Part shown: positions 415 to 34,783 of the stretch, in pieces | Position numbering within the stretch: position 1 is the first letter of the stretch | How the letters are laid out: every line of letters starts with the position of its first letter | Assembly (NCBI GenBank): GCA_977016875.1 | Contig: CDRNST010000144.1 | Location: 6,262,001-6,326,000, forward strand | Reading direction: 5' to 3' | Source of the DNA: Pavona decussata | Taxonomy: Eukaryota | DNA: 64,000 nt | Made by a program: the position numbers and the translations under genes | The notes under the pieces: generated by a model | The model's database searches: none | Seen by the model: only the letters and a program-made list of their open reading frames with translations | What the model was told of the DNA's origin: nothing

Positions 415-3400
415 CATATATTTGGAAGGACATATCATCCAGTACAGTTTTGCAAAAAAAAAAATGTTATTAAGATTTTTAGACCTTTTCACATTGAAAT
501 ACATGCAGCCAATACGAAACCGAAGGATTCACTTAGTCATATGAATTGACTTATAAAGCAAAAAGCCGGCTAATTAGGTCGGTAGAATTGCCCCGAAAAC
601 CATTGTGGGTACAGCTAATTTACGCACTCTTATTATCACTCTTAAGGGTGAATGTTGTCACACCACAGGAATTTTTACCGATTACTCAGGGTCAGTAAAA
701 CACGCAATGTCAAACCGTTAAAAACTTCCAACTACATTTGAAGTCCGGAGAGAGATTTCGTCCCCAGAATGCTTATGGCATTGTGCGCGCTCTCAAGCTT
801 CTTTCGTACACGTACAAGCACAAAGAAACAAGACGAATCTATTGCTTTCAAGGATTTTGTTTTCTAGAAAGGAAAATTCTGTAACTGCACAATTAATGTG
901 ACGATTCCTAAGAAAGAATAGTATGTGGCTCTCTTAAAGTAATGAGAGAAGCGGGAATTGGAATGCTATTAATTAGCATTAAGACTGATTAATATTCAAG
1001 TGTCTTGATCAGTATATTCATTGGGTATCAAGATACATACACCTGACCAAATGGGTCATCAGCTTATAAATAATAAATGAGATTGAGAATCGGCACCCAT
1101 GAGTCTGTTTTCTCACCCCTATTAAAATTGTATTTGCGTCCTCGCTTTGTCCGAAGCTTGCAGATATAGATTTGTTTCAATTTTATATATTGCTCTCAGC
1201 GGGTGATCGATCTGAGCAGGTAGTTTGATTACAATGCTAGTCGATATCAAAAATTTAATTAAACCAACAGAGATGGCACCCCACGACTTTCCGCAAAATA
1301 TAGGCATATTTCATTTTATCTTTCTGACATATTAAAACAAGTTGAGTGTAAACCTTCAACACATTTACTTTTCTAAAGATTTTTAATAGAGCAAAGGTTG
1401 ACAACTGGGTTACGTATATATATAAAAAAGAATTAACTTTTAAGTGAGGAGGAGGACAGGAAGAAGAAAAATAAGGCTCCGATGAAACGTGATTAACCTG
1501 GATAAACATGTTGATAACAAACAGCTTGAAAATTAAGGACGAACTCCAGCCACAATGGAATGAGTTAGTAATACGTGAAATAGTTTACTTATGACTGGAT
1601 ACTCTAAAGTATATTTTACGAATCGCAAACCTATGATGATGCAAAATCCAAAATGAAATAGAAGAATAGATAATGACTTGACAGTAAAGGGGCACATGCT
1701 GCAATTAAGAAAATTATGCTTTTACCACACAATCTTACACGACTAATGAAGCAAATAGAGACAATCCTGTAAACATTGAAGAAGAGTAAAATTCTATTCA
1801 CTTACATCAGTTTTTAAACAACACACTCAATCCTATCACGACAATTTTCTGTTCTGACGGAAATCTAAGGTTCTGCTGGGTCTGTATAGTTGTGTATTAC
1901 ACGTGAACTGATTTTGATCTTCATGCGTCATATTATGTTGGAAATAGACAAGAAAATCTTTGCGTTTAATTCAGTGGTTACAGTTTCAACTGACAAGAAT
2001 CTTTTGATTTATCAGGAGCACTCAACGGTTCGTCTCTTTGGACTGGTATCTATTTGGAAGACTTTGGCCGTCTAGAAAAAAGATTGGAAAAATCGTGATG
2101 ATTTGAATTGTAATTTTCGTTGGAAAATATCACCTCAAACTTTCGTGCAAATAAAAAAAATAATTGCTTTCGTTTCAGGAGAGACAAAAATGTAGTTTAA
2201 ATGCGAAATAAGGCCAGCTAGCACAGTTCCTTTCCCTAAAACGTTCTGCGGCTTTTTCAGATAAAGAATCCGAACAGATAAAGCTGTAGTAGTTTACATA
2301 AAATAATCTGGTAACATAGGAACAGCATTTTAAATATTTTGCATAAATCTTCTCGTTGGGTGCTTTTGATTTGACTTGACTTTGACTTTTGACTTGAGTT
2401 TACCCTTTGTTATTTGCCAATCTGTATATTCAGATTCAGTATCCCTAAAGAGCGCACGACCTCAAAAACAATAGCCACAAAGCCAATATTTTAACTGGCA
2501 TTACTAAACGTATCTAGGCAATTCTATAACTGAATTTTGCTTATGTTTACTATTTTACATTACATTTTAACAGATTAAACTAAAGAAAATCAGACGGAAT
2601 TGTTAATACCATCTTCACGTTTCGTCGTAATTTTCTTGGAGATAAAATATAAACAATTTCTTTTGCTCAAATACATGTTAAAAATATTTGGATAAGATTA
2701 AAATTACCGCTAGTTACGAGAATGCGTCACTAACAGCTTAAGTCCTCACTACTGAGTCTCACAACTAACTTACCACCTCAATTTTCGAGGATGTTAGGCG
2801 ATAAACTACGTGTTCTTGAATAACTCCAAACATTGTTTGGTGTTCTGCTAGCTTTTCTGTTAGCGTCTCCCCTGGTGTGTTATGATTTTAATTTGTCTGC
2901 CTCGTCAGCCAAGAAAAGATAAAAGTTGCTGGACTTCCCAGTGGTAAAGAATTGCGACCTGGATTTCTTGAATATTGCTATTACCTGATTACATTTCCAA
3001 ACTCCTACCAACATTTGCAAGGACGACACTGGTGTACAATTAAGAACAGTTGAAAGTGGTTTGATGTGCGAAATAAGGTAATCGCCGAAAGCGAAAAGAT
3101 GTCACGTTTTCAATTAGTTTAGATTAATAAAGCAAGGAGAGTAGTAGGCCCTGAGGAAATGAATATGTTCTATTTTATAACCAATCAATAATTTTCTCGT
3201 AAATTTAATACAGCGGTGAGCCTTTTGTCATTGCTCATCACCATATGTATTGCAGGTGGTCTTAAAAGTTAATATAATAATATCAAATAAAAGAGAGCAT
3301 ATTTACGTGAGGACGGATGGGATTTGAAAGAAAAAGCGTATAGAGGAGTTTAATATTAATATGAAATTCGAGAGGTTGAATGTTCTGAAGAAGCCCTCTC

Positions 3401-11670: not shown

Positions 11671-12433
11671 CTATGAAACATAGGAACGAAGAATTTTGCC
11701 CCGGCAGTTCAGAATCTTAAAAAAGCCTTTCCTAAACTCGTCATTCATACCAGCATACAACAGCGGATTCACACAGCTATTAACGTAAACCATGATACTT
11801 CCAAAAGTGAGAAATTTATCCAAATGAATCCAGTCAGCTCCTGAGCCAAACTCGTACCATAACCACACCACCTGATTGGGAAGAAGGCAAATGGCGTAAA
11901 GAAGAACGACTGCCACCAACATCTGTACAATCTTGGTGCTCCTTTGAAGGCGTTTCTCTTCTTGCCGTGCGCTGGAAGCATGATCTTTTTTGGAGTTTTT
12001 GCGGCGTTCCTTTTCTGAATTCAGTGGGATGAGGGCCGAAGGATCGTTTGAAGGAAATTCACTTTCCTCGGCAAACTCGCTGTACTTGTTAGAGGCCTTC
12101 ATTGCGCTCCTGTAGGCGCTGTCGGAGATGCCACTCGCTTGCCGGTTCTTTGCTATACGCGATGCTTGTTCGCGCAGCTTTAGAGCTACCATCGTATACG
12201 CAAAACCAATGATAACCAGCGGCAGGGCATATTGAAACACAAACAAGCCCATGGTGTAGAGTTTAACGGCAATAGGTAAAGGCCAGTCTTCTGCACAGTA
12301 GCCGTCTTGCATCTTAAGTGCTAGTATGTAGGGAAGCACTAGGGTTAGGGACATGAACCATGTTGTGCTGATAATAATTGCTGTTTGCATGGTGGTGAAG
12401 CGTGGCTTCCATGGGTGTATCACTGCCCGGTAC
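11671..12433 (-). CDS. Class A GPCR, coding exon 2 (DRY to TM7, helix 8, stop); joined CDS 1098 nt = 365 aa
   Basis: Acceptor TTTTGTCCTCTTTGCCAAG|G completes CGG (Arg) followed by TAC, giving DRY. Then YRAVIHPW, TM4 Trp, ECL2 CAEDW, TM5 YALP, long ICL3, TM6 YAICLLP, TM7 NSCVNPLLY, EFRKGF, TAG. 335+763 nt keeps the frame. Confidence 0.95.
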
Positions 12434-12569
12434 CTTGGCAAAGAGGACAAAAGTATTAGTTATTTTAATGAAACGATACTCTAAATAAATAAAAAAACAC
12501 GATTTTGTTTACCGAGAGTGACACGGAACAGTTTAACGAATGACAAACCTGTGACCCTTTTATTCTGGG

Positions 12570-13147: not shown

Positions 13148-13475
13148 GAATAATGTATTATTCAGTATTATTCACGGGCATGCTCGGAAAAAAAGAAATC
13201 CGAGTGCTCCTATCAGGAGTCAAACCTAAGACCTTCCGATTACTAGTTCGGATGCTCTACCACTGAGCTACAATGGAACTTAGTTTTAATGGCCTAAGCT
13301 TCCACGAGTCTCCTGTAGCTCAGTGGTAGAGCACCCGAACTAGTAATTGGAAGGTCTTAAGTTCGACTCCTGATAGGAGCACTCGGATTTTTTCCGAGTA
13401 TGCTTGTGTCATTTACTGAATAATACATCATTCGCATTTATTCACCAGGCTTAAAATATTCCATCACATTTATTC
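13148..13475. mobile_element. Head-to-head inverted pair of tRNA-derived repeats in the GPCR intron
   Basis: Arms 13148-13272 and 13314-13433 are reverse complements (TGTAGCTCAGTGGTAGAGC...GTTCGACTCC A/B boxes) around a 41-nt spacer; homologous to 34520-34783. Confidence 0.85.
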
Positions 13476-13543
13476 CATTGCGAGTATTTAAGGTTGTAAA
13501 TCAGAAAGCGGTCTAAGAATAGTAAAAGCGATAAAAATCTCAC

Positions 13544-13878
13544 CGATCATAACTGATGGCTGCAAGAGTTGCGGCAGAACAGTTTGTGAAGAGCGTCATA
13601 GCAGGCCATAACAGTTTGCACATGGCAGCACCAAGAGGCCAGACAGGGTATGTTACTTTCAACACCACATCAAACGGAATGCACAACATCGCTACCATAA
13701 GGTCTGACACGGCCAGGTTCACCAATAAGTAGTTACGTGTAGTGCGCATGCGTGGTGTTTGAAAAATCACTAAGCACACGAGCGTGTTCCCGGTGACACC
13801 AATGATAAAGATGATGGCAAACAAAGTGTACTCTGTCACTTGAATGGCAGTTATTCCCTCTTCGGTTGAGCTCGTCAT
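13544..13878 (-). CDS. Class A (rhodopsin-like) GPCR, peptide/neuropeptide-receptor type, coding exon 1 (TM1-TM3)
   Basis: MTSSTEEG...GNTLV (TM1), NLAVSDL (TM2), WPLGAAMCK (ECL1/TM3 Cys), AISYD-R. Ends CG|GTGAG (phase-2 donor, GT at 13543-13542). Upstream acceptor TTTTCTTTGTCCAG opens the exon at 14081, with no ATG before 13878. Confidence 0.95.
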
Positions 13879-16800
13879 TTCTTCGTCAAAGTTTCAGTAG
13901 CAAGCCACTCTACTGCTTTTTGTTTCTTTAAAACTGTTTCTTTTGTTTATGTATTCCGCTCTAACGAGTTGGCAAACTTTTCGTTTATAAAAGCAGGCCT
14001 TCCACTGTCCTCCAATACTCAGTGCAACGGCTTCGTATATTCTCAGTCAGTTGCTGAGGTATGTCTGTTTCTTGATGATTTCTGGACAAAGAAAAGTAGT
14101 TATGTATATTTTAATGCCATGATTTTTTACTTGAAATCAAACCTATGGAAGATGTAGTTATCGTAGAGTATAATCCAGTTTGACGAATGCCTGATATTTG
14201 ATTTCTTCAAGATATCGTTGATTCCAAGTAAAAGTGGTTAGAATTCTGGAAAATTGGTATGGTTAAAAATGTATCCTAGAAATACACTCAGCCCGAGTGT
14301 CAACTTTTCAACAAGGCTGCAGCCTTATCAACAACTGGAGAAATGGTCTGGAAATCTGTATGAAACTATCAATTCAATGTTAAAATCAACGGAGTCAGGT
14401 ATTGGAAGCGAGAATGGTTTGCTTGGCGTGTTATAGCATTGAAATCTACGCACTCGTAGTGGGAACTCCTAGTCGTACTCGTAGCGTAACTCCTGACCGT
14501 CTTTCGTATTTTTTGAGAATCCTTTGAAAATCAGTAAAAAGTTCATTCAACTTTCGTAGTCATTGCATGACATTTTTCTTACGTTTCGCTGACTGCAGTT
14601 TGAGTTTAATGAAGTACCTTTTTAATATTCCAAGCGATCACCTGCAGTTTAGTGACCATTTGTACAACAAGGCCAGTGGAAAAATTCACGTTTGATTTAA
14701 AAGAAATCCTTCAAACTGACTGGCTTAAAACAACACGCTTACCAGAAAAAAAAAACAGGTCACAGTTAGTTTGAGCTGTTTTCTTAGGCAATGTAGGGTG
14801 AACCACTTAACAAGATAAAGAAAATAACGTGCCGTGGCAACTTATACTCCCAACTTTTGTATATTCCTGATTATTTATTACATTATTAATAAAGACGATA
14901 CCTCTTTTTAGGTTCTATATTTCCAATGCTTAAATGAATTAGCCTTAGGCATGTGATCAGTTTAGCGCAAAGTCAATCAGGAAGATTAATAGCAGGTTTC
15001 TTTTAACCTCTTTCGTTTTAAGGCTTTTCCAGTTTAAACTTGTTTTACAAGTTATGTTGTTAGTACACTCAATTTTATGAAGTGAAAGCAGTAAAACCCC
15101 ATTCTTAAGAAATGTGTCCTTCTTTATGTCCACAAATCGCAACAAAGGTTCAAATGCGTAGTAATATAGTTTCTAATATCGCTTCCATACAATGCAGTTT
15201 TTCTTTTTCTTTGTAGGAAGAAGGTCCAATTGCGAAGTTGAACAACCACCTGACTGGTATTACTCACAACAAGACATACTTTTGAAAGATATTCCTCTGT
15301 ACGTGACAATTCAAATACAGATTAGTTTTTCAATCTTCTTTTTGTGATAAAAGTGACAAATTATTAAGCGGCAGGATAATGGGAACATTTCCCGGAAAAG
15401 CGGAGATCTCACTGACTGACATTTAAAAAAGATCAACAAAATATATCTTTTACGTACAAAATTCAATTTAAGAATAATTTTATCTCCATCTGCATCGAAC
15501 CAGGATGATCTTGTTTTTTAAAGAAATTTTTTGGAAGCTAACGGCTGATGTCATTTTAGTCAAAAGGACATTTGAAAGGGACATAACTGTTTTCCCTGAA
15601 GTGACTCGGTTGGAAAGTTGTGAAGTATAAAGTTAAGTTGAGAGAAGAAATGAAAGCTGAGAAGGTACAGTCTTACGTTATTGTTGCAGCGTACTTAATT
15701 CAGGTTTTGTTGCTGTAAAGCATTTGGAAACGTTTCGGTCTCTTTCCTAGAGATAAGCTCGTTTAATCTCCATGATTTCTTTTATTCTTCCGATTTACTT
15801 GACTTTGTTAAAACAATAAACGATGGTGCGGTATCAAATTCCGGATCTAACGACCTAAGAGAGAGAGAGAGTGTGTGATGATCGAATCTGTATTTTCAAA
15901 TTTATAATGAGAAAACTTTCAAGCTCGAAGACGCAACGAAAGCATTTACTAAAAGCCTTCGATTTTACTTGCACCTAAGGCTTGCGCAATTTGACAACGT
16001 TTCTGAAATGTGTCACTTGGGGTAAGGTCAAGAAAAGAAAAATTAAGCGTAAAAGAAACAACCATGCTAAAAGAGCTTTCATTTGAATTGAATAGTTACA
16101 CAGTTGTTCAGATCCAACTTCCACAGTAAACTGAACAACCGCTCAGTAGCTACTTTAAAAGGCAGAATCTCATTACTTGCTCAAGGCTTAACTCCAGCTA
16201 AAGAAAATTAGATTGTGCCGGCAGCAAGTTTGCACAGCTGAAAGTTTTTTTCATCTCGACCTGGTGGCATAAATATCGCGGCTGACAGCAGAAGGAACAA
16301 AACACCGAATACAAATTGTTATTATCTTTTCGGCAAAGTGCCTTTAGTACAGGAAATTTGTTTAAGGCAATGATATCTTGTACTTTCTGGTTGATAGTTT
16401 GTCAAATACCTTAATCCACCTGCTACAGCTACCTGCGCCCTATTCATAAAATGTTGTTCGCAGTATATAATATGTAGTGTTTTTTTGTTTGTTTTGTTTT
16501 GTTTTGTTTTGTTTTTTTTTCAATTTTGGTCATTTTATGATTTGTATTTTGCAGTCGTATGCACACACCACGGACTGAAACAATATCAGTTTTTCTCGAT
16601 CCATTTTGGTGTCTTTATCCATTTGTATTATTTTGCGTCATGCCGTGAGTGGATAACACAAATTGACTTATTTCATGAATATTACAACAGAAAACCAATT
16701 ACAGTGCTTAAGTTTAACAGGCTCTTAAAATGCAAATTAACCGGGTTAGTTGCGTTCATTTCAAAACAACCGATTGCGTGCGATAAATATAATCCTCCTT

Positions 16801-17664
16801 TTGAAAATAAAAGCCTCTAGCCTTTTTTTCAAAAACAGTTTTAGTTCACAAACAATTTGATTGTTTTGGTCTGTGTAGTCTATACAGATAATGACAAATT
16901 GTTGGGAAGAACTTAAGCTCATCCAAGAAAAATAACATTATTAAAATGAACCGACATGACTACACGATCTGAGTTGTGGCGTAGCTTGTAATTATCCGGC
17001 GCTCAAGAGAGAACTACTTTTAAAGTTATTACTGTGAGAGTCGTTTCTCTGAAAAAAGGTGTGAACACCAGCTGGTTAATACAGCCAGTCATGAAATTTT
17101 TAACCTAAACACAGCGTATATTTCATTTCTTATTTGATAAAAGCCCTCTTTTAATTCACCTTTCAGTTATCAGTTAAAATACAAAGAAAAAATGAGGATT
17201 TTTTCAAATAGCACTTTTTCATCAAAACAGTTTTCACATTTATTATTGCTTTATTTTGCCTTATATTCCTCATAATTGCTTTAGTTGATGAAAAACAACG
17301 GTCCCTTTCTTTCGTCATTAAACTAGAGCACTCCAGTATTCATTTATTCTCTAAGAATTAAGGTATCACGGTTGCGTTTATGCGTTGAAAATTTAAGCGA
17401 TGTTACTGAGGTCTATTCCCAGGATTTTCTGAATTCTAACTACACAGCATCATTCTTTAAAACTCATATTTCTGTTAACAAAATGCAAAACTTTTTTATG
17501 TTACCACACAGCTGCATCAAAGAATCCTCTAATTAGTGCGAAGACAGGATTCAGAAACATAGCTTTTAGAACGGGCATAAAGCTTTATAATTCAAGACTA
17601 ACGAACTGAATCTTAATGAAGATGTACCGAATATTAATTTTAAAAACCAATACTAGTAACCAAC

Positions 17665-18852
17665 AAAGAAACAAGACACTCAAGCTTACCTTGCCTCAAA
17701 TGCTCTCGCTTTCTTGTTGCTTCATTTCAAGAGTGATCTCCCTGACGACCGAATCGTAAAGGCTTTTTAGCTGTCGGGACTTGACCAAATAAAGGTGTTG
17801 TGGGCATAAGTTTGTTAGAGAAGTCGACGTATTCCCTAAGGGCCAATCTAAATGACTAAAATTATGAAAGTTGAGATAGATTCACCATAGCAACGGGACA
17901 AAATGCGAGAACAATTTGCTTTCGCTCAAACGGCGAGATAAAAGGCGTTTTAATTAATTTTTAACGATATTCGTCATATATATTTTCATCTAGCACTTAT
18001 TCTAGACATGACTTCTGAATAACTATGAATATGTTATTATTTTTTTACATAGTGGCCTAAAGTCTACTTCGTTTTGTCTCGTGTACTTTCTTAAAGTAGC
18101 TAGCATTCTAACGCAAACATATTACATAAAACTGTCAATGATTTTATCTCTTAGTTTCACTCAAGATCCCTTGACTGTTAAACCACAACCAATAGTAATG
18201 GAAAGATTGACAAGATCTATGTGTTCCGAATACTACAGTTAACCTGTCAAATTATAAAACACTTTAAAATTGTTCTCAGTGTCCTCAATGCTGGTGTTGG
18301 TCCATCTTCAGTGTTTTAGCAGCCATGTTGCTAATGATGTATGGATAGATGTACTTGCCTACATTGATACCACGGAAAAAAAAGGAATTTTATTGAAATT
18401 AATACAGTTTTAATTACAGTTTCTATTTTCAGGAATTAATACGCTGATATTGTAGCACCTTGAGAAATTAACATATTTAAGAAAATTGTAATCTCACTTT
18501 TTCCATTCTGTAATTAGCTCGCTTTGCATAAAGAACACTTCTTTCCTTTCTTAAGATCCGTCAGTTAGCGATTCTTTGTTACTTTAGCTAACATCTCAAA
18601 CATGAACGTTTCTCAATCGGAAAAACGTCAGTCTGTTAAATCATGGCGTAGAAACTGCCGACATAGATTAAACTGATGGCCCATTTAATCCACATGATTC
18701 TAAAACAAGTGTAATTTTATGACGGGATTATTTGGGAAAATTAAACAAAACTTTATCAAGTTAATTGGCTTTTTCAAAAAAGGCTGGCCCAGCTTTGAGA
18801 TAAATTTTGTTGGTGATAACGAATAAGTGAATTAACTGATTTAGAAGAACTC
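17665..18852 (-). promoter_or_regulatory. Candidate promoter + non-coding first exon of the GPCR, copy A of a local duplication
   Basis: Collinear with 20848-22280. Minus-strand donor AAG|GTAAGC (exon ends 17690), conserved TTGACCAAATAAAGGTG 17781-17797, CCAAT 17843-17847, X-box-like TTCACCATAGCAAC 17881-17894. Confidence 0.55.
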
Positions 18853-19219
18853 TTAATAAAAGAATAAACTGAATGAAATTTGGAGTCATGTAAGATTCAA
18901 CCGAAACCCTGTGTAAGTTAAGCCCCGATGGCCGCAAGGTTTGCCCAGTTGTATCTTGGAAACCTGCAGTTGTAGAATACTTGCTTCACTGAGTATCGCT
19001 ATAAACTCTGTATTCGTATCCCGCTCATAAGCCAGATTTTGTTCTGCGTTTTTTCTGAACTGAAGACTGCCCTCCGGTCAATATGTGCAAACGAAACCTG
19101 TGACCTTATTTCTGTAGTACTGTCCATTTTTGCTACAACCGATAAAATTGTAATAATTATAAGTTGCTACTTTAAAACGTACTTAAAGAAAATGGCCGAA
19201 CTTTTTCTCACAACCGTAA

Positions 19220-19551
19220 GGAAGGTACCTCCTAACACAGATATTTTTGCACAGTGTATGACTATGAAGGAGCAGCAGATCATAGCAATGGCTATTGAAA
19301 TACCTCCAAAATATTGGGGGCAACCATACATTTCTCCGAGACAATTAAACAACAATAATTCAAAAAATCTTTAAAATACATGACAGCATATTTTTTTCCA
19401 AGCTGAAGCTTAGTTATCACTGAAAAATGCATCGTTAACCCCAAGTTTATTTTTGTTTTCCAACAGCCCTTGGAAGCCTTAAGAAATCAGTTTCTCGGAC
19501 CATCACGAGATGCGCAGAACGTATGCGCAGTAGCAAAAAGAGGCATCGTCC
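19220..19551 (-). mobile_element. MITE family A copy, inverted
   Basis: CGAGATGCGCAGAACGTATGCGCAGTA is the reverse complement of sequence near the left end of 22504-22896; ends AGGCATCGTCC. Confidence 0.75.
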
Positions 19552-20847
19552 TTGATAGGGCTCTAAATACCCGTCGGGGAACTTGATCTTGTATTAAAAC
19601 GAGAGTATTACAGAATATTTTCCAGGATGAACTCTTGCTAAGCTTGAGAACTGGAGTCTCGTATTTTCGTCCTTAATTTCTGTCATTTTTGTCAATTTTA
19701 GTGGTTTAAGTTATATTTCCGAATCACGTTAAAACTAAAATGATTTACTTTAATTAAATTATAAGGTATCGCCGAGACAGTGTGTTCCACAAGCGATCAA
19801 CATATGTAGTTTTCAAACTAGATGCGATTGCAACAAATATCAAGACGAGGCTAGCCGTATATTTCAGCAGCTAGCAGATACTGTGATCTCGTGCTACTGC
19901 AACCGGCGAAAATAATTATTGAACAATAAGACCAAAGAGGGTTAAAAGTCGAAAGAAGAATCTTGAAATATTGAACAACTTCAAAATTTTTAATGACGTA
20001 AGTTGAGAATAATTAATTTATTTCTACTGAAAACAAATATCAAATTTAAAAGCAGGATTTCTCGTCGCGTTCTTTCTAACTTGTCACTTGCCCATATGTT
20101 TTGTGAGCACAGAAAGGTCCGTGTCAAGAACTGAATGGCGATGTCCACAATATTAATAACGATAACAACATTCGTAGATACAAATCAAGTATTGCTTGTT
20201 TTCTAATCACTCTGCAGTGAAACTAGAACTAAACATTTTTACTCAAAATTTCGTCAAATGTAGTCAAGAATCGGGAATAGGCTTCTCGTTTGTGATGATT
20301 ACTGATACCTATACACGGGCTGCAGAAGAACAGTACAGTGTAGTCGTCCTGAATGTTAAGGATCATAACAAATATTCATTAATTAAATAAATGCATTTTA
20401 GCCTTGCATATCCAACGTTTACATCAATAGCTAATACTAAATTAAGGTTCCTCTCAGCCCATATTAAAAACTTTACGTTAAGCCAAAACGAGATATGTCG
20501 TCAAGTGACCTTGAACTGCAAAGAACACCTAAATAATATATATCTAAATTAGGAAAAGTCATGCGTGCTTCCAAAGCAGAATGTAGTACGTAGTAGAGTC
20601 TTTATTTTGCGAGAGCAATACATAATAGTGCATAACACTAATACTGTAAACTTGGGATAATCCCCAATACAATCCTGTTTCCATAACGTAAGAAAATACA
20701 TTGCTCTCTAATCACTCTGCAGTGAGACGACAACAAAACATTTGCACACTAAATACCATCGAACGCAGACAGGAATCAGGAATGAGCAAAACAACAAAAA
20801 TAATACCAGTGCGCGACCTAACAATCTCGCTTCTTTTTCCAACCATG

Positions 20848-22280
20848 AAAGAAACAAGACGCTCAAGCTTCTTGTCATGTACTCACCGCGTCTGAAATGC
20901 TCTCACTTTCTTGTTGCTTCAGGACAAGTCTGACCTATGTGACGTCAGAATTATGAGTTGACCAAATAAAGGTGCTAGCACTTAGCTTGTTAGATCAGTT
21001 GATTTATTACTGTAAGGGCCAATCTTATCGTCATACCTGACTAAAATTATGAAAATTGAGATGGAGTTACCATAGCAACGGGACAAAATCTAGCGCTTAG
21101 TCAAGCCATGACTTCTAACTAAAAATTAATTTAAAAAGCAATGCCTGTTTTGTCTTGTGTACTTTCTGAAGCAGCAGTGTATAAAACTGACAATGATATT
21201 ATCTCTTATTTTCGTCAAGATCATACCTCATATAACTGTCAACCGCACCTAATTGTGTTCAGGCGTTAGTATAGTTAACCAGTTAAATTATGAACTTTAA
21301 CATTATCTTCAATGCGGGTGTTGTTTCATCTTTAATTGATTTAGCATGCAGCCGTGTCACTGATGATGTATGGATGTACCTCCATATATTGTTACATCTT
21401 TCAACACAGAATATATAAAAAACGTTTTATCGAAATAAATGAACAAGAAAGTACGCTTAAATAGCTGGATAAATTTTCTTTAGAGTAAAATGTTTCACTT
21501 TATAGGCACCTAAATTGTTTGTGCCAAATATTTTTCGCAAATATTTTCCGGCAAGATTTTTCTTTGTCGTGTCCATCAACAGCAAGTAAACCTGTGTTAC
21601 CGTTCAGAGATCAGACAGGAAAAAGAATCCACTGATTAAAATGTGTCCATCGGGTGCAGAGACAGCTTCATTCCTGGGTTTAAATAATAACTAAGAAATA
21701 TCATACAAAGTGTTACTCTCAGCTGAAAAGATTTGTTGTAACCTACAACTTTAAAAGACTACGGAACATTTTTGTTTGCTTATAAGCATTCTCCCTGATC
21801 AGAGATTAGAGGAAAACATGCAGTTTTCTGCAGGCTTGCATATTATTTAAGAAAATTGTAATCTAGCTTTGTCCATTTGGAAATTAGTTCTTGATTTAAA
21901 AGACAAGTCGTTCCTTTTTACAGATCCGCCAATTAGCGATTCTTAACCGTGTTATTTAAGATGACATTCCAAAAATGAACGTTTATCAATCGGAACTGAA
22001 GCCTCTCTTAAATCATGTCATAGAGACATAGAAGATCGCCCACATAGATTAAAATGGTCCATTAAAGTTCCATGGTTTTAGAATATGTGTGATCTTAAGA
22101 CGGGATTGTCGAGAAAATTAAAGAGACCTAATCAAGTTAATGGTAATAGTAAGTTAATACGTAAGTCCGGCTCAGGTTTAATCAAATTTTGATGGCGATA
22201 ACGTGAATGATAACGTACATATGAATGAACGAATTAGTTAATTAAGTAATTACTCAATTAATTGATTAAGAAAAACTCAG
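20848..22280 (-). promoter_or_regulatory. Candidate promoter + non-coding first exon of the GPCR, copy B of a local duplication
   Basis: Donor GCG|GTGAGT (exon ends 20887), CRE TGACGTCA 20940-20947, TTGACCAAATAAAGGTG 20958-20974, CCAAT 21019-21023, X-box GTTACCATAGCAAC 21066-21079, plus a ~0.4 kb segment absent from copy A. Confidence 0.55.
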
Positions 22281-22503
22281 TATCATACATTACAAGGTGG
22301 TTATATCTTAATTGAATCGGTGGAGGAAAACCCAAAGTGTATCGGATTATTCAGTTGAAGCAGGCTGCTGATGCAGTGTTTCCTGTGTTACTGCCTTAGT
22401 ATGCTATACAAGGTGGTTGTAACTCTTAACTATTAAAACTATCAGTATTCAGGGTGAATGCTTGAAAGACTTGAGGACTGGAATCTTTTTTTTTTGTCCT
22501 TAA

Positions 22504-22896
22504 GGACGGTGCCTACTTTTGTTACTGCGCATACGTTCTGCGCATCTCGAGATACTCGAGTTTCCTATGGGTGTTGCCTACTAATACAGGGATATTTTTG
22601 CACGGTTTAAAACTATGTGAAGAAAGCAGAACTTAGCAAGTACTTTTGGTATCCAGAAAGGAAATTGGGGGTAACAATGCATTTTTCAGAGAAAAAAAGC
22701 TTCAATTTTGAACAAAACGCCATACATTTCTTTGTATTTTACTGTTTTTTAGAATAATTATTGCTTAATTATCTCTAAAAAATGTATGGTCATCCCCAAA
22801 TTTCTTTTTGGATTTCAAAAGCCCTTTCTAAGATCTGCTTTCCATGCATTGTCATATTTACCACACAAAAATACTTCTTTATTAGTAGGCACCATA
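22504..22896 (+). mobile_element. TTAA-flanked MITE, family A
   Basis: TTAA-GGACGGTGCCTACT ... AGTAGGCACCATA-TTAA, internally quasi-palindromic; relatives at 19220-19551 and 32456-32782. Confidence 0.8.
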
Positions 22897-23281: not shown

Positions 23282-24147
23282 TTAATTTTGAATAAAAACA
23301 TTTTTGTCAGGATATTTTTTCAGCTTTTATAACACAGAAAATCCCATGTCAATGAGTGAATGGTGGTGTTCATAATTACTAAGAATAAAAATATTCAAAT
23401 CAAAGATTGCAAGGAACTTACCTCTGACAAAATTTTTAGTTATACCTTCCCACAGCATTCACAAGCACAACTCCTTGTGTGTGAAATGAACGATTCCAAT
23501 AAGGGTGGGATTAAAGAAATCGAACGGTAACAGACATCAATGCCATGACTTTAATGATGTCGATTAAAATTGTCCATTTAACTGGTCAAAAGAGTTGTGT
23601 CATGGAGTATTAATGACCAGGGTGATTTAAGTACGTTTCAACTCGCGTGGAATTTCCACGCCCTCGCAAACCTCATAAATCTGTCAAGTTACTAAATTTC
23701 TTATTTTCCGGTTACTCATAACAACATACTTCAAAACAGCTCAATCATCACTATTGATATTACTTTTAATGTAACGGTGTTTAATAAAACAAACGAAAAA
23801 ACATTTCAATCAGCAGCAAAACCTTGAAAATGATCGGCTATCGCGTGTCCTTCGATGTTTTCAAAGTCGAGAGAAAAAAATGATCAGATTTTAGGTTTAA
23901 AAATATGCAGGAATTTTATGCTATTTCTAACCTTGAGCGTATAAAAGAGCATCAAATGAGCAATTTGCATCACGCATTGTTTTTAGACGTCGTTACAAGT
24001 TTTGAAGTGGTCATGAGAGCCAACGCGCAGTGTAATAACAAGGAAATTCCAGCACGAACGGATACTTTTTCCCACGTGTTAATTGGTTATAACGGCGATT
24101 GGAAACAATTAATCGGCTTATCCCTTTCACTGAATCAGGTCAACAAG

Positions 24148-32455: not shown

Positions 32456-32782
32456 GGAAGGGGCCTAAAAATACAAAGCCTTTTTTGGCGCGGCCTATGA
32501 CTATGCGCAAAAAGAGGATCTTAGCAAGAGTTATTGTAATACAAAAAGACAATTGGGGGTAGCCACGTATTTTTCAGGGATAGTTAAGGTTCAACTTAGA
32601 AAAAGATGCCATACATTGCTTTGTATTTTAACGCTTTCTAGAATTATAGTTGCTTAATTGTCTCTGAAAAATGCATGGCTACCCCCAGGTACCTTTTTCG
32701 ATTTCAAAATCCGTTTCTAAGATCTACTTTTCCCGCGTAGTCATAAACTGGGAAAATTCCTTTGCATTAGGAGGCACTGCGC
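32456..32782. mobile_element. MITE family A copy
   Basis: TTAA-GGAAGGGGCCTA ... TAGGAGGCACTGCGC-TTAA; internal GCCATACATT..TTTGTATTTTA and TTGCTTAATT shared with 22504-22896. Confidence 0.75.
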
Positions 32783-34519: not shown

Positions 34520-34783
34520 AAGAAATGTGATGTTATATTTTGAACCTGGTGAAAAAATGATAGATGTATGTTTTTCAGTCAGTGACACAGGCACACTCGG
34601 AAAAAGAAAATCCGAGTTCTCCCAACTGGGGTCGAACATAAGACCTTCCGATTCCTAGCTCGCATGCTCTATCACTAAGCTACAGGAGACTCGTGAAAGC
34701 TAAGACCATTAAACAAGGTTCATGGGACAAACATCCTGCATACTGTTAACATTTTTGTGGTATATGTGAAAGAAATGTGATGT
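34520..34783 (-). mobile_element. tRNA-derived repeat, same family as 13148-13475
   Basis: Shares CTCGGAAAAA..AAATCCGAGT, TAAGACCTTCCGATT and GCTACAGGAGACTCGTG with the intron copies; AAGAAATGTGATGT at both ends. Confidence 0.8.

Follow-up and report, generated by a model that had tools for sequence, protein, structure and literature searches.

The DNA analysed here is a 64-kb window of the Pavona decussata assembly GCA_977016875.1 (contig CDRNST010000144.1, positions 6,262,001 to 6,326,000), with positions counted from its first letter. Its subject is a single rhodopsin-family (class A) G-protein-coupled receptor (GPCR) gene on the minus strand, whose two coding exons are split after the DRY motif, together with two diverged copies of a non-coding cassette, A and B, that lie upstream of it. 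Copy A carries a working untranslated exon 1 of this gene. The two coding exons, searched separately, match Pfam 7tm_1 with scores of 75.9 and 101.8 bits (gathering cut-off 30.5), and full-length orthologues of 356-365 aa are available. Its relatives are scleractinian and Nematostella GPCRs, the closest protein being 97% alike, and distant relatives are called orexin- or galanin-receptor-like in their source annotations. A tblastn search with a full-length orthologue found no further GPCR fragment within the window and, in particular, no GPCR-like coding relic between or upstream of the copies; no sizeable open reading frame (ORF) was found in the ~20 kb upstream. The coding exons, numbered to allow for exon 1, are as follows (TM, transmembrane segment; UTR, untranslated region; X2 is a sequencing run).

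13544-14081, minus strand: exon 2, with 203 nt of 5' UTR and the first coding part (13544-13878, ATG at 13878-13876), TM1-TM3, ending at the DRY motif (7tm_1 E 4.5e-21; X2 contigs)
11671-12434, minus strand: exon 3, the second coding part, with TM4-TM7, the C-terminus and the stop (7tm_1 E 5.6e-29; X2 contig end at 13542)

The cassette copies were delimited by repeat search, self-BLAST and alignment.

17658-18866, minus strand: copy A, with the promoter-proximal region, exon 1A and ~30 nt from the start of intron 1
20841-22292, minus strand: copy B, its aligned blocks ~81% identical to those of A, plus an extra stretch of ~330 nt at about 21480-21820

Repeat search and self-BLAST linked 17658-18765 to 20841-22141 by a series of direct matches, the start-to-start spacing being 3029-3376. 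A MAFFT alignment of the two copies slipped register in the middle of the cassette, and a global alignment with cheap gap extension regained collinearity over the full limits given above. In this alignment A and B are 81% identical across 922 solid columns, with 79 transitions and 98 transversions (Kimura two-parameter distance 0.22). Only 14 of the 57 indels are multiples of three, which argues that the sequence is non-coding, and copy A holds no ORF of 60 aa or more. The original prediction, which had described the copies as collinear, heavily diverged and non-coding, is thus confirmed, and its claim that the promoter rather than the gene was duplicated is supported, since the cassette homology is accompanied by no coding relic near B. 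On the gene side the homology stops at 17658/20841, ~30 nt past the donor site. Beyond 18866/22292 two short patches still align (19623-19676 with 22450-22503, and 20099-20173 with 23325-23396), and these weak outer patches suggest that the copied unit may have been larger than ~1.2 kb. Everything else out there is taken up by lineage-specific repeats, which are not the same for the two units.

The cassette is confined to this locus. Searches of the whole 602-Mb assembly with each copy, the counts from which are lower bounds, returned A and B locally plus one 61-nt match at chance level. A nearby family of foldback miniature inverted-repeat transposable elements (MITEs), used as positive control for these searches, gave 2,393 first-look candidates or more. 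An nhmmer profile built from A and B found no third copy within the window. The many dispersed copies that would have marked the pair as an ordinary transposon were therefore not found.

Splicing of exon 1A

Contigs assembled from RNA runs were placed on positions 13501-19500, a region chosen to include a coding exon as internal control; such contigs are unable to show transcript starts or the absence of a transcript. In run X2, which is labelled with the organism of the window and whose library type was guessed, one contig of 152 nt (depth 3.3) covers 13989-14081 and 17690-17748 and skips the 3,608 nt between. On the plus strand the skipped segment is bounded by CT..AC, which makes it a GT..AG intron of the minus strand, and it is because this junction is canonical that we take the contig to derive from RNA. 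Two of its 152 letters differ from the window, and copy B differs from copy A at 25% of these exon positions; the contig therefore derives from copy A. A further X2 contig departs from the contiguous sequence at 13542 and continues into the start of the next coding exon, which indicates that X2 holds spliced mRNA of the GPCR gene. The junction from 17690 to 14081 had been predicted from the sequence to the nucleotide, as had an acceptor at 14082-14084 through which the first coding exon would be fed by an upstream exon, and the X2 contig bears out both, with the acceptor used at 14082-14083. It adds two features to the gene.

17690-17748, minus strand: the portion of non-coding exon 1A covered by the X2 contig, with its 3' end exact at 17690 and the transcription start site (TSS) at or upstream of 17748
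14082-17689, minus strand: intron 1, 3,608 nt, GT..AG, separating exon 1A from the first coding exon (X2 joint 14081/17690)

A local script was used to count ATG triplets across the leader and the exon-2 UTR. Exon 1A contains an upstream ORF (uORF) of nine codons, ATG to TGA, at 17725-17696 on the minus strand; at the homologous site in B its ATG is CTG.

Contigs from the metatranscriptome runs X4 and X6 are of a different kind. They are 90-95% alike to the window, unspliced over 13533-16472 and extend 9-11 nt into the coding intron, and a single-copy stretch of 929 nt in intron 1 (14309-15237) is replaced in them by 91 other letters, a large indel that sets haplotypes or sister species apart. 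We take these contigs to come from the DNA, or from nascent RNA, of a haplotype or sister species that is ~5% diverged, and hence to be uninformative on splicing.

Divergence of the two copies and their donor sites

The distance between A and B (~0.22) is about four times the ~5% divergence in intron 1 between the window and the X4/X6 relative. The duplication should therefore be older than that split, and both copies would be expected in the relative too. Orthologous loci and transcripts from other coral genera (L012-L019, from JGI coral metagenomes and metatranscriptomes) align with the window in the coding exons only, at 75-86% nucleotide identity, and neither their 5' UTRs nor up to 5 kb upstream of them hold any homology to A or B. 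Since the cassette is undetectable upstream of these orthologues, it is young relative to the splits between those genera and not deeply conserved.

One of these sequences merits separate mention. Positions 1-470 of L013, from another coral genus, belong to a transcript that is spliced at the coding intron and is collinear with L017/L018 4301-4771 through the homologue of the exon-2 acceptor, which reflects either retention of intron 1 or a start site inside the intron in that genus. As an unspliced or intron-started isoform of another genus, it does not count against the splicing of exon 1A.

Identity between the copies, taken block by block, has no exon- or promoter-centred peak, and the known exon-1 stretch is the least conserved part.

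Intron stub of 30 nt: 90%
Known exon-1 stretch: 75%
The 156 nt upstream of the exon-1 stretch: 84%
Middle: 82%
Distal: 78%

Over the whole cassette the longest run of matches is 26 and there are 10 runs of 13 or more. In 5,000 shuffles of the alignment columns, neither the longest run (p 0.49), nor the number of runs of at least 13 (p 0.73), nor the bases in such runs (p 0.65), nor the variance of identity in 20-column windows (p 0.79) was out of the ordinary. The four exact islands on which the original prediction had drawn were all located, each once per copy and nowhere else in the window (17781/20958, 17837/21013, 17853/21038 and 17884/21069). Over the cassette they do not stand above background (shuffle p 0.49-0.79), and exact stretches of this kind are what a uniform identity of ~81% would yield by chance. 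The proximal 250 nt hold six indels, one of which removes or adds 19 nt in the likely core-promoter area of A.

17758-17776, minus strand: a stretch of 19 nt that A has and B lacks, 10-28 nt 5' of the observed limit of exon 1A, in the likely core-promoter/TSS area (alignment)
21066-21079: X-box-like (RFX-type) palindrome GTTGCTATGGTAAC in B, the sole site in the window by motif scan; the homologous A site, 17881-17894, has a degenerate right half

The palindrome lies ~180 nt upstream of B's predicted donor. The count of X-box-like sites is not significant (chance expectation 0.56; two or more matches in 12 of 100 shuffles), and none was found upstream of the fetched orthologue loci. CCAAT-type and TATA-like islands are common to A and B. 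Rfam and tRNA scans of the cassettes returned nothing.

The donor sites deserve closer attention. Copy A reads CAAGCTTACC on the plus strand at 17681, giving the minus-strand donor AAG/GTAAGC with the exon end at 17690. Copy B has the same string interrupted by 14 extra nt, giving the predicted minus-strand donor GCG/GTGAGT with the exon end at 20887.

20871-20884, minus strand: indel of 14 nt, which follow the donor GT immediately in B and are missing from A (alignment)
20887-20960, minus strand: putative exon 1B, homologous to exon 1A, with the predicted donor GT at 20886-20885 and a 5' end guessed from homology (alignment)

Both donor strings stand at homologous positions as had been reported. 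The 14-nt indel is real too, but the accompanying argument of a donor that survived an indel is weakened: the difference could equally be an insertion in B or a deletion in the functional copy A, since the orthologue loci hold nothing resembling A or B that might serve as an outgroup.

Neighbouring repeats

Three repeats flank the cassettes.

19217-19553: foldback MITE of a high-copy family, upstream of copy A and outside the cassette homology (self-BLAST, genome search)
22502-22893: a MITE of the same family, upstream of copy B and in the opposite orientation (repeat search, self-BLAST)
20196-20783: repeat element of ~590 nt with 83-nt terminal direct repeats (77% alike), 58 nt beyond the intron-side boundary of B (repeat search)

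The opposite orientations of the two MITEs point to independent insertion or a local inversion. The same family is also present at 32463-32777, and RNA-library contigs are stacked on the MITE at very high depth with many different flanks. Parts of the element at 20196-20783 recur on many contigs of the genome, and it may mask further intron-side homology between A and B, for example a weak match of 17612-17638 with 20131-20157.

Within the coding intron of the GPCR gene, 13193-13393 is a tRNA-like inverted pair (94% complementary), to which a copy at 34520-34713, 21 kb away, is related. Rfam places a tRNA at 13207-13277 on the minus strand and another at 13309-13381 on the plus strand, and ARAGORN calls tRNA-Thr(AGT). 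The pair looks like a tRNA-derived foldback repeat and not like two working tRNA genes.

Possible roles of copy B and comparison with known arrays

How the two copies are to be understood turns on copy B. What happened first is a local duplication, in which a single-copy rhodopsin-type GPCR gene had part of its 5' end duplicated in tandem. A segment of ~1.2 kb, made up of the promoter-proximal region, untranslated exon 1 and ~30 nt from the start of intron 1, was copied once, on the same strand and 3.2 kb upstream, and proximal A is the working cassette. We see roughly an even chance that distal B is an idle or minor relic. At its birth B would have been a second, identical promoter and first exon, the transcripts of which would cross A and splice from 20887 to 14081. 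It would then have drifted at about a uniform rate along its length, to reach the present distance of ~0.22 and 57 indels. On this account B is most likely a start site that is idle or, at best, of minor use, its GT donor being kept by descent. A second promoter under selection and with its own regulation is improbable, because the comparison of A with B gives no excess of run length or windowed identity, because the exon-1 block is the least conserved, and because an indel falls in the likely core-promoter area of A.

A number of points weigh against such an account of B. That B is idle is itself read from a missing signal of constraint and is not an observation, and a comparison of two sequences has low power to detect constraint on short motifs. 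The splicing of A is supported by a single X2 contig of low depth from a library whose type was guessed. The proximal 247 nt hold six of the runs of at least 13 matches, at a nominal p of 0.02; the longest run there has p 0.48, and as several tests were run we count the former value as weak. The CCAAT-type island is present in B, as is a perfect X-box-like palindrome. The donor of B at the homologous site, GTGAGT, is also still close to consensus in spite of the 14-nt indel at +3. If the 14 nt were inserted in B, consensus-like letters at +3 to +6 would be an accident of 1 in 32 to 1 in 128, a hint of selection on B; had A instead lost them, this would say only that the functional copy kept its donor, with B simply retaining the ancestral GTGAGT. 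Taken together, the donor is modest evidence in favour of the use of B, by roughly three to one; the lack of a conservation signal and the indel in the core-promoter area offset it.

The chief competitor, to which we assign an appreciable but short-of-even probability, is that both cassettes are active promoters, each with its own untranslated exon spliced to 14081, as a case of regulatory subfunctionalization after duplication of the promoter alone. Right after the duplication B had everything that A has, a strong predicted donor still stands at its homologous position, and the ~20 kb upstream of B hold no other coding gene for it to serve. The shared CCAAT-type and TATA-like islands, the X-box-like palindrome that is intact in B only, and the nominal clustering of identity in the proximal block would also fit. 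Exon 1B would add no upstream ATG, so that, if both leaders were used, exons 1A and 1B would differ in uORF content and the control of translation would differ with them. What holds us back is that conservation shows no excess over the whole cassette and is lowest in exon 1, that the 19-nt indel falls at the probable core promoter of A, that the donor indel is without polarity, and that the word share of the RNA runs (0.10-0.12 of 9.5 kb) is already explained by the known exons. A more specific form, in which B with its RFX-type X-box and leader free of a uORF would serve ciliated sensory cells and A would supply its uORF-bearing leader elsewhere, seems to us unlikely.

It is very unlikely, in our estimation, that B is transcribed outside the GPCR mRNA, as an upstream non-coding transcript interfering with promoter A, or acts in an enhancer-like manner only. 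Its position 3.2 kb upstream on the same strand means that any transcript from B must cross promoter A, and Rfam recognizes no known RNA family in the cassette. That the copies are a low-copy transposable element or dispersed repeat with accidental donor-like GT sites we regard as scarcely credible: the surroundings are indeed rich in repeats, with MITEs at 19217-19553 and 22502-22893 and the element at 20196-20783, but the genome searches, the counts of which are lower bounds, returned two local copies and a chance-level match against thousands of MITE candidates, and the donor of A is used in RNA.

Returning to a partial 5' duplication with A at work and B idle or minor, the arrangement is what local duplication ordinarily produces, and it recalls the tandem variable first exons of UGT1, the clustered protocadherins (PCDH) and GCNT2, which have their own promoters and are spliced to common exons (PMC3325998, PMC1885805, PMC3333863). 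Like the UGT1 and PCDH arrays, the coral locus has paralogous first-exon cassettes in tandem and on one strand, ahead of a single set of common exons, and in both cases the cassettes arose by local duplication. Each coral copy has a donor facing one acceptor, that of B being predicted; splicing from a cassette's own donor to the common acceptor was seen for A (17690 to 14081) in the contigs placed on 13501-19500. Unlike those arrays, it consists of two units only and has no coding variable first exon: the leader is untranslated, with the ATG 203 nt into exon 2, and the protein would be identical from either start. Nor were CTCF-type conserved sequence elements for promoter choice seen, although no search aimed at them was made. 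The coral locus thus works like a minimal non-coding version of a UGT1/PCDH-type array, and is not a member of those families.

A different parallel is offered by the exon-1 variants of NR3C1 and by NOS1, where several alternative untranslated 5' exons and promoters feed one acceptor near the ATG and it is regulation, not the protein, that differs. The leader exons of those genes are mostly not recognizable paralogues of one another; the coral leader copies, in contrast, are clear duplicates. An initial literature search for a direct precedent of the coral arrangement returned nothing useful.

The solid gain at present is one of annotation. The GPCR gene begins with a non-coding exon 1, which spans 17690-17748 or more and is followed by a first intron of 3.6 kb, and gene models that begin at the coding exon miss its promoter. 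If B is used, the locus would in addition provide a clean and small case, in an early-branching animal, of regulatory diversification by copying of a promoter and leader exon alone. The protein would be untouched and both units can be aligned, so that the changes would be directly readable.

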